NCBI GenBank assembly: GCA_038496445.1
Contig: JALMLS010000311.1
Span: 124,001 to 188,000, forward strand
Length of the DNA: 64,000 bases
Direction: 5' to 3'
Origin: Trichosphaerium sp. ATCC 40318
Taxonomy: Eukaryota; Protista; Tubulinea
Under the pieces are notes generated by a model, which did no database searches, was not told where the DNA came from, and was given only the letters and a program-made list of their open reading frames with translations. Below, piece by piece: positions 25,187 through 28,100 of this stretch; the first letter of the stretch is position 1, and each line of letters begins with the position of its first letter. The translations under genes were made by a program, and so were the position numbers.

Positions 25187-28100
25187 ATGCAGCCAAGTGA
25201 CACGTACCTACCAGCGCTCAAGGTATTTTTGCCTACGAACGTTATCTAACACCTCTCATAGGAGTATTTTGGCTTTAACGCGTTCAGGCCGTATCAAGAG
25301 GCAATAATTCGTGGTATTATTGAAGGAAAGGATCAATTTGTTTCATTGGTACGTTAACGCTCAAGTATCCTCTTTAACATCCCCGTGGGCAACGTCGGCA
25401 GGAAAATCGCTTTGTTTCCAGCTACCACCGCTTGTTGTAAGAAAACCTGGAATTGTAATATCTCCTCTCATCAGCTTGATGCATGACCAGGCGCGTAGGC
25501 AGGCCCATATCATTATACTTATTTTTGACATTGTGACAGGTGACAAAATTAAATCAACAGGGCATAGCTGCAGTTGCTCTATCGGCAAATTCAGACGTTG
25601 CATCTTATCGCAGAGCAATGGTATGTATTCAAAATCTACTCTCAAAGATTACCACAACTCACATCATTTTATAGGGAGGACATTGTGCCTTGAGTACGTT
25701 TCCAGTTGGCAGCGCTATATAACATTGGCTGTAGTTTACATGTCGCCCGAAAAGTTAGTTGGTTGTTTGAACGATATAGAACGTCTAGAACATACTATTG
25801 GTATCAGTTTATTTGCAATAGATGAAGCTCATTGTATATCTCAATGGTATCACCAAGTTTATCTTAAATACATCTAACAAAACCTCTTAGGGGCCCTAGT
25901 TTTCGCCCAAAGTATAGGCAACTAAGCGTGTTGCGAGAGCGGTTCCCATCAATTCCAATAATGGTATGTAATAGCGTTGGCCTTCTACAAACGTTGATCT
26001 AGTTTAGGCTCTCACAGCTGCTGCTACATCTAATATTCAGAAGGATATTGTAGATGAACTTAAACTAATATCTCCAGTTCTTACACGTGGTTCTTATAAT
26101 CGCCCAAATCTTTTCTACATTGTAAGGCCTAAAGTATCTTTACTTGAAGATTTGTCTTTTCTAGCTGAGGTTAAACGTTCTACAATCATATATTGCAATA
26201 CAATTGTCGAAGTGCATGCTGTCAGAGACTTCCTATGTGTACGATAAACAATGGTAAATGGGGTAGCTATTAATCACAGTTTAGACATTGGGTATAAAAG
26301 CTGGGACTTACCACGCTTCAATGAGCCCTGAAAAGAGGAAAGAAAATCAAAAACTCTTTAATTGTGATGACCTTACTATTATCGTAGCAACAATTGCATT
26401 TGGTATGCTACTAATGATGCAATACTTTGTGCTGATTCAAATTAAGGTCTTGGTGTTGATAAACCAGATGTCCGCTTAGTAGTGCACTATGGACCGCCTA
26501 AAAATATTGAAGCTTACTATCAAGAAGTACGTCTTGTCGGAGTATCCCGTGTTTACTTTTGCTAGTCTGGGCGTGCTGGGCGTGATGGATTACCCTCAAA
26601 ATGTATTCTTTTTTACTCACCTGGTGATATTGCTATTGTTCACAGACGACTCTCTACCAGCGCTTCCGGAACGTATGAAAGGTTTAATGGCATATTCGTG
26701 TATTGACATCATCTTAGAAAAGAATTGTTTACGAAAATGGTAGCCTATGCGAGTTGCACTGACTGCAGAAGACGAATAATTCTTGAGTACTTTGGAGAGT
26801 CTATGGTTGGTGAAAATTGCAAAACATGTGATAATTGTGTTGATGATAGACCTGGGAAGGATCTCTCACACGTTCGTACTCAGTTTGTTATGATACTGAA
26901 AATCATAACAATAGTCTTTAGGACGCATTTCTTTTCTTAAATGTGGTTGACAATGTACTTCAACATGCTCATATTTCTGGCTTTGGTTTGGGTATGTATG
27001 TATCTGTATTGATTGGTCAAGCAAGTCATAAGAAGGTATGCATGTTTATGGAATCAATTCAAAGGTTTTCCGTAACGTCTCATAGGTCCAGCAGTATGGT
27101 ATTAACAAGCTTGATTGTTTTTCATCCGGAAAGTTTAAGTCAAAAAAATGGTGGCAGGAGATGGGACGTCAGCTGGCTTATAAGGGGTATATACAAGTAC
27201 GCAATAGGTTGAATTAATAAAAATATTAATGGGTTAATAGGAGAGAGTCAATGGCCGTTACATTACATTTTCACTTGTAGCTAAAGGATCCAAATTTGTT
27301 GCTGATTACAAAGACGGTAAAGCAAGTCTTATAATGAGACTTACACCAACTATGGAAAAGAGTATGACTCTGATGTAACAAAACATGGTCAAAATACTGT
27401 TTCTTTTGCTTTCAAACAAGTTACATTAAACAACTCTGGATCTTCAAAGATAAACAGGAGAAGTACTAAACGTAACTTAAAGAAAGTCAATGTTGATTGT
27501 AGTGTATCTAAATTATATGCCATACTGATAAAGTTGAGAAAGCGTGTTGCCGATGAAAGGTTCCTTGCACCCTGGGCAGTACTTCCAGAAAGTACACTAG
27601 GATTATTAGCAAAGCATAAACCTCTAGGTAAGTTAGAACTTTTTTCTTATTTATTTCTAACTTTTTGTCGAAGATGTCGTTTCTTTTGCGAAGATCGATG
27701 GTATTAATGATAAGCAAGCAGCTGATTTATTTCAAGTCTTTGGAGCTGCAATAAAGGACTTTATTAGAGAAGAGAGAAAAAACAAAACAAGACAAGTCTC
27801 TTCTAAAAGAACAATTAAAAAAAGTGATAGTTGGGGAAAAGCTAGATACACTTCTATAGGTAAAATGACATCAAAGATACCTATGAATGATGAAGAACAA
27901 GCTGCATACGACTTGTTTAGTCTGGGTTTATCAATACCAAAGATTGCAAACATACGTAAAAAGGAAGTGGAAGTCATTAAAGGTACAACAACAACACAAG
28001 CTCCTCATTAACTTTCTTTCTTTTTTTAAGGTTTACTCCTGTCTACCCTTGAAAAGAACCAACCTTTTAACGCTTCAGAGCTGAGAGCTCATTTTGGCAT

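Follow-up and report, generated by a model that had tools for sequence, protein, structure and literature searches.

A helicase gene of the marine amoeba Trichosphaerium sp. ATCC 40318 contains a short intron of 40 nucleotides (nt) whose 3' end reads TGG in place of a sequence ending in AG. It is tentatively regarded here, at odds slightly short of even, as a genuine major-type (U2-type) intron in which an ancestral TAG became TGG and which would be removed at its GG end in at least some transcripts. The stretch of DNA analysed, called the window below, comprises 64,000 nt (assembly GCA_038496445.1, contig JALMLS010000311.1, positions 124,001-188,000, forward strand), and all coordinates are positions within it. 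The candidate intron is delimited by sequence and homology and occupies 25349-25388 on the forward strand (GTACGT...CTTTAAC...CCCGTGG). It lies in a WRN/RecQ-like helicase gene at 25187-28698 on the same strand. Removal at 25388 is predicted to give the only messenger RNA (mRNA) that encodes an intact helicase of the RecQ/WRN type. The use of this site appears quite possible, if not yet probable, from the exact junction indicated by homology, the site architecture, a gene that is intact and under constraint, an RNA contig from the run termed X1 that is unspliced at 25421, a second acceptor without AG in the window and published precedents.

The junction between exons 2 and 3

Exon 2 (25262-25348, forward strand) was delimited by reading frames and homology. 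It encodes 29 residues with the Q motif and ends on a codon boundary. As an earlier note on this DNA had described, the exon closes with ...DQFVSL (caa ttt gtt tca ttg) and is followed by gtacgt, so that reading through gives gta cgt TAA. Exon 3 (25389-25490, forward strand), supported by Pfam, PDB and homologues, encodes 34 residues with the Walker A motif (motif I) in 102 nt and has phase 0 at both ends. In agreement with the same note, it resumes at 25389 (gca acg tcg gca gga aaa tcg, ATSAGKS) directly after ...ctttaacatccccgtgg; the 3' end of the intron before 25389 reads ...CTTTAACATCCCCGTGG.

In the alignment with E. coli RecQ (1oyw), residues 1-27 of exon 2 correspond to residues 19-45 and residues 2-34 of exon 3 to residues 49-81. 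Therefore, the two exons abut, and no residue is missing or extra. A word search and an exhaustive HMMER search provided 267 RecQ homologues, to each of which the exons were aligned separately. The end of exon 2 and the start of exon 3 were exactly contiguous in 212 of the 231 homologues that could be scored. As judged from these proteins, the anomaly is real and the junction is pinned to the base. The same mRNA would arise from cuts of the GG..TG (25348-25387) and TA..GG (25350-25389) type, as a g flanks both ends; GT..GG is the sole register with a normal donor. The claim that an intact helicase needs the exact removal of 25349-25388, with no usable AG at the end, is thus upheld, while the three readings offered with it (a GT-GG intron, a TAG>TGG mutation and a base-call error) are not separated.

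The terminal AG of a major-type intron is absent from this sequence. GG stands in place of AG at 25387-25388 (forward strand; TGG for TAG), and no AG in register would spare the Walker A motif. The TGG is one transition away from TAG, the dominant acceptor triplet of the window. The donor ttg/GTACGTT has a score of 10.2 bits, which is the 92nd percentile of the 257 introns predicted in the window, and the acceptor context at 25388 is at the 73rd percentile. All the percentiles of donors and acceptor contexts refer to these 257 introns, and the acceptor context was scored with the last two letters left out. A branch-like CTTTAAC, recognised by motif only, is located at 25372-25378 (forward strand) near the intron end, as reported previously. 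Its presumed branch A at 25377 is 11 nt before the end of the candidate intron, which is the modal distance of the introns in the window. The length of 40 nt is typical for the genome. The site also has the features described for tandem acceptors (PMC2374985): position -3 is T, position +1 is G, and an AG follows 13 nt downstream.

The nearby AGs had been dismissed as lying in the wrong frame. This holds for those at 25364/65 and 25400/01; the AG at 25420/21 is in frame and had been overlooked. The first AG downstream of the GG (25400-25401, forward strand) is out of frame, 13 nt past the GG and 24 nt past the branch A, and its context score of -4.7 is below that of every predicted intron. The second (25420-25421, forward strand; tttccag/cta) has a context at the 14th percentile and would close an in-frame GT-AG intron of 73 nt (25349-25421), deleting 11 residues including the Walker A motif. 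Thus, a canonical product without Walker A is possible. Since the context is good at 25388 and poor at 25401 and 25421, the former would be the evolved acceptor. Skipping of exon 3 (102 nt, phase 0-0) would also stay in frame and result in a helicase without Walker A.

Introns of the window were predicted by a splice-aware parser, which was trained on 14 RNA-confirmed introns and iterated over the window. It recovers all 14 of them and predicts about 257 introns in about 23 genes. When restricted to AG, the parser picks the intron of 73 nt and silently removes Walker A. With free acceptors it still prefers this AG intron, because codon statistics are too weak over 11 codons.

The helicase gene and its RNA contigs

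The gene model was obtained by three-frame translation and exon chaining, and the exons were searched singly in Pfam and PDB. In this homology model, the gene has 18 exons with 2730 coding bases, giving 909 codons in a single frame. Eight of its introns are present as GT..AG joints in RNA contigs. The Pfam matches of single exons include DEAD (E 7e-4 and 0.09), Helicase_C (1e-3), RecQ_Zn_bind (3e-13), RQC (2.5e-6) and HRDC (5e-4); with the exception of RecQ_Zn_bind and RQC, these single-exon scores are below the whole-protein cut-offs. The top PDB match of exon 3 is the human WRN helicase (E 3e-9), and 9 of the 11 residues of its Walker A stretch are identical to the WRN sequence ATGYGKSLCFQ. 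The model begins 12 codons ahead of the Q-motif exon, too few for the WRN 3'-5' exonuclease domain. By these matches, the gene is a member of the RecQ family that is WRN-like in the helicase core only.

The RNA data were Logan contigs. Seven runs were found, none of them containing more than 48% of the sampled words, and four (X1, X2, X3 and X5) were compared with the window. All four contain spliced RNA contigs. The contigs show 14 GT..AG joints, six of which appear as CT..AC and originate from a neighbouring gene on the minus strand. The 909-codon frame of the helicase has no indel or other lesion, and all the RecQ domains are present. The coding differences between the window and the four runs comprise 10 synonymous and 3 non-synonymous changes. 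All three non-synonymous changes are in the last exon, which encodes the C-terminal tail, and each of the three differences that run X3 has in the helicase core is synonymous. This ratio, together with the silent changes in the core, indicates that the gene is under purifying selection in the population.

The X1 contig on the helicase gene is 1215 nt long and begins at 25419, according to record coordinates and bin depths. It has CAG (25419-21) ahead of 25422. Therefore, splicing at 25421 did not occur in the assembled RNA, in which exon 3 is represented. From 25419 to 26986, X1 matches the window without a difference, including the GCGCGT donor of intron 3, which is consequently not private to the assembly.

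Intron 3 differs between homology and RNA. By homology it is a GC..AG intron of 49 nt (25491-25539, forward strand) with the donor GCGCGT at the 48th percentile, and the exon ends that it would join, those of exon 3 and exon 4 (25540-25620), are contiguous in 131 of 144 scorable homologues. In X1 RNA, 41 nt are missing (25497-25537, forward strand; joint 25496>25538, with 3 ambiguous letters), and the ends are AG..AC as printed. The same junction can be written as a GC..AG intron at 25499-25539, whose donor GCAGGC is at the 3rd percentile. The joined RNA ...GCGCGT/AGGTGACA contains TGA in the frame of exon 3 and TAG in the frame of exon 4. Thus, X1 RNA is unproductive at intron 3. In terms of its predicted splice signals, exon 3 is flanked by two weak sites, the GG acceptor and the GCGCGT donor. 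Rescue of the frame by combining the 41-nt intron 3 with alternative ends of intron 2 (53 nt, 73 nt or retention) was considered by hand and rejected, as none of the combinations opens the helicase frame.

Searches in other data were negative within their scope. A word search with the genomic open reading frame 25314-25874, in which TGG is read as a tryptophan codon, gave no match above 36% identity. An exhaustive HMMER search with the same frame revealed no protein of the same species or of a close relative, and the best match had about 60% identity in two motif stretches. Exact patterns covering the acceptor region, in which 25387 was set to N, and the beginning of exon 3 each had 0 matches in the metagenome contigs of the Joint Genome Institute (JGI).

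Two further observations concern the RNA of this gene. In run X2, two contigs match only about 35 nt around DEAH-WG (25813-25847) and then continue as unlike sequence GGACATGACTTCAGACC, encoding GHDFRPE. These contigs probably represent another RecQ gene, either a paralogue or that of another organism, and not the helicase locus. At 27358-27370, the X1 contig differs from the window by 2 substitutions and 5 deleted bases in 13 nt, at the predicted exon/intron boundary 27361/27362. The strain of X1 may carry an indel polymorphism here or use another splice donor.

A second predicted acceptor without AG and the introns of the window

An intron without AG is also predicted from the reading frame in an AGAP-like GTPase gene on the minus strand (13215-13264). 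It is 50 nt long and reads GTAAGT...CTATTTTG (GT..TG). It separates MAKKVTKDFTV from the P-loop exon VVLGSESCGKTS, whose frame opens just past TAA, and on this strand the stretch from the in-frame TAA to the P-loop is free of AG. For this intron, the donor score is 8.9 bits and the acceptor context ranks at the 95th percentile. There are AGs 16 and 18 nt downstream of the TG site, and use of the one at 18 nt would give an in-frame GT-AG intron of 68 nt that removes VVLGSE. The site also fits the TG-AG tandem pattern. The downstream exons match Ras and PH domains, which fits an AGAP-like protein; the homology of the P-loop exon is weak.

The window has a G+C content of about 38% and is dense in short introns, with a median predicted length of 50 nt. 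The predicted types are 241 GT-AG and 18 GC-AG introns (18/259, about 7%), and the GC donors are mostly of the GCA[CAT]G type. The most frequent donor is GTACGT, present in 45 of 257 predicted introns, and about half of all donors begin with GTAC. TAG is found at 176 predicted acceptors (68%), AAG at 56, CAG at 22 and GAG at 5. The RNA-confirmed introns have yTrAC branch sites.

Pairs with a GG ending and open frames on both sides occurred 7 times in the window, with 7.9 expected, and this test does not discriminate. A scan for coding sequence hidden in long introns was uninformative. Folding of the RNA of 25335-25435 gave no structure above chance (z = +1.26), hence no sign of a structure hiding or presenting a splice site. 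Strings ATATCCTT/GTATCCTT, which resemble the donors of minor-type (U12-type) introns, were found at 16740, 19630, 23116, 37268 (minus strand) and other positions, for example ttg/ATATCCTTTGATTG at 16740.

Competing explanations and significance

If the intron is used at 25388, the donor GTACGT and the branch site CTTTAAC would be recognised normally, and the second catalytic step would take the G-ending site 11 nt past the branch A, at the usual distance of the spliceosome here. T at -3 and G at both -1 and +1 are kept at this site. Early AG recognition may rely on the dinucleotide at 25400/01, 13 nt downstream, as has been proposed for human TG-AG tandem 3' splice sites. Splicing at 25401 or 25421 would then yield unproductive or Walker-A-less by-products, and 25388 would be a weak and leaky acceptor.

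Several observations weigh against such use. Depth is zero over 25169-25418 in all four runs, an interval that spans both 25387 and the junction 25348/25389. The unproductive 41-nt form of intron 3 is the sole RNA form seen for exon 3; for this reason, the 5' part of the gene may be poorly or wrongly processed. Furthermore, no enrichment of GG endings emerged from the parser with free acceptors, which made only three scattered and unconvincing non-AG picks over the window. In the P-loop (region of 25395-25397), which reads ATSAGKS, S is found where 98% of the 267 homologues have G, and in the loop after DEAH (25895-25900), which reads WGPSFRP, P and S are found where 93% and 89% of the homologues have H and D. 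Other invariant motif residues (K, S, DEAH, W, F and R) are kept. The atypical P-loop and WGPSFRP loop may be due to relaxed constraint on a divergent or weakened ATPase. In humans, -2A>G mutations of acceptors normally kill the site and lead to exon skipping, as described for SLC26A4 (PMC8987850), and AG>TG mutations activate neighbouring AGs (PMC2374985). In that study, a non-AG site was in no case the sole acceptor of a U2 intron (PMC2374985).

The leading alternative is a dead or crippled acceptor, and it is somewhat doubtful. According to it, A>G at 25387 is real and recent, whether as one of the alleles in a heterozygous or polyploid culture or as a strain-specific lesion, and the junction 25348/25389 is hardly or never made. 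The transcripts would be spliced to the AG at 25401, with a frameshift, or to that at 25421, with loss of Walker A, or else would lack exon 3 or keep the intron, and the helicase would be null or hypomorphic on this haplotype. Loss of the site is what -2A>G usually leads to in the systems studied (PMC8987850 and PMC2374985), and the single transition from TAG, the mis-splicing of intron 3 with stops in both relevant frames and the unusual residues at invariant motif positions point in the same direction. In addition, a single A>G change would turn GCACGT into the neighbouring donor GCGCGT, and X1 contigs differ from the window at about 0.6% of positions, so that allelic or strain variation is plentiful. 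However, the 909 codons are free of any other lesion, the 10:3 ratio of synonymous to non-synonymous changes shows constraint, and the GCGCGT donor is common to X1 and the window. The AGAP-like case would, moreover, demand two independent null alleles among about 23 predicted genes in 64 kilobases. An error of assembly or base calling, with A as the true base at 25387 and an ordinary GT-AG intron, is decidedly unlikely. It would account for everything by a single substitution, and the change creates a GGG run, an error-prone context on some platforms. However, X1 record 2 has no listed difference in the exon pieces, and its two printed pieces (26007-26401, about 350 nt) contain zero other letters; the differences that do occur are common to independent runs, as polymorphisms behave, and no indel is present over 2730 coding bases. 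The chance that an error would hit the acceptor at 25387 was estimated as well below a few percent, from an inferred and not a measured rate, and a second hit at 13215 would be less likely still.

It is very improbable that the canonical products are the intended ones, that is, that the 73-nt GT-AG intron or the skipping of exon 3 serves to form a Walker-A-less isoform, ATPase-dead or regulatory. Both events keep the frame, exon 3 has a weak site on either side, and the P-loop (ATSAGKS) is already atypical. However, the agreement of the Walker A stretch with WRN at 9 of 11 residues means that it has been kept as coding sequence, the X1 contig holds 25419-25421 together with the rest of exon 3, and the acceptor context at 25421 reaches only the 14th percentile. 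A minor-type (U12-type) intron, of a class in which GG ends are known as rare exceptions and the 3' site is set by the distance from the branch site, is extremely improbable. The U12 branch consensus is TCCTTAAC, located 10-15 nt from the 3' end. The sequence TCTTTAAC is one base off this consensus, the distance of 11 nt from branch to end fits, and the presence of ATATCCTT-type donors in the window means that minor introns probably exist in the genome. GT-GG introns are listed mainly among the U12 type, with 8 cases (PMC1557818). However, the defining donor RTATCCTT is absent, and the actual donor GTACGTTA is the most frequent one of the major type in the window; CTTTAAC is also compatible with the ordinary yTrAC branch sites seen in RNA-confirmed introns. 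The string GTATCCTC at 25365 was rejected as a U12 donor, because it lies inside the intron and read-through from exon 2 reaches the in-frame TAA first.

The favoured reading, a used GT-GG intron of the major type, has partial counterparts in known systems. The GT-GG 3' site of BANP arose from an ancestral AG (still AG in fish), is conserved across vertebrates and is linked with alternative use of 3' sites (PMC4176328). Like the helicase site, it has a GG acceptor in an otherwise U2/U12-like consensus context. The BANP site was demonstrated by RNA sequencing (RNA-seq) and complementary DNA (cDNA) and is alternative, whereas the putative GG site of the helicase would be the productive site. The TG 3' sites of U2 introns function only in tandem with an AG within 28 nt, with a pyrimidine in position -3 and a purine in position +1 (Szafranski et al. 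2007, PMC2374985). The tandem model has the AG recognised early and the non-AG site selected in the second step (PMC2374985). The downstream AG is at 13 nt in the helicase gene and at 16/18 nt in the AGAP-like gene, as compared with the human limit of 28 nt. The human sites have a TG end, serve without exception as minor or alternative sites and cause small in-frame changes; the helicase site ends in GG, and its AG partner is out of frame, in the worst context of the window.

The GT-GG introns of the U12 type, such as those of ARAF and SLC12A7 (Sheth et al. 2006, PMC1557818), share with the helicase intron the GT...GG ends and the short fixed distance past a TTAAC-type branch. The RTATCCTT donor of the U12 type is missing from the helicase intron, which has the standard major-type GTACGT. 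The mutation SLC26A4 c.919-2A>G likewise replaces this one base at position -2 of an intron that is otherwise normal; it inactivates the site and leads to skipping of the exon and a frameshift (PMC8987850), whereas skipping of helicase exon 3 would be in frame.

If the GG site is not used, the case reduces to a common kind of splice-site lesion or to a base error on a single haplotype, with no more than local interest. Under either outcome, the helicase gene model needs manual treatment. If it is used, the GT-GG site would join the known rare class of non-AG acceptors and would be the sole productive acceptor of a major-type intron without AG, located in a DNA-repair helicase. Human non-AG acceptors of this sort are known only as rare alternative sites. 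With non-AG acceptors in use, gene predictors would mis-annotate conserved genes of this organism. The GG site and other AG-less introns would then point to the choice of the 3' site by distance and not by the AG dinucleotide. In the strongest form, the major spliceosome here would place the 3' site mainly by measuring about 11 nt from the branch A and would require no more than a final G; this form is unlikely. Should it be true, introns ending in TGG and TTG would be spliced constitutively and productively in conserved genes (RecQ/WRN and AGAP-like), and the major-type system of Trichosphaerium would have a relaxed 3' splice-site code beside its unusual GTACGT/GCACGT donor code.

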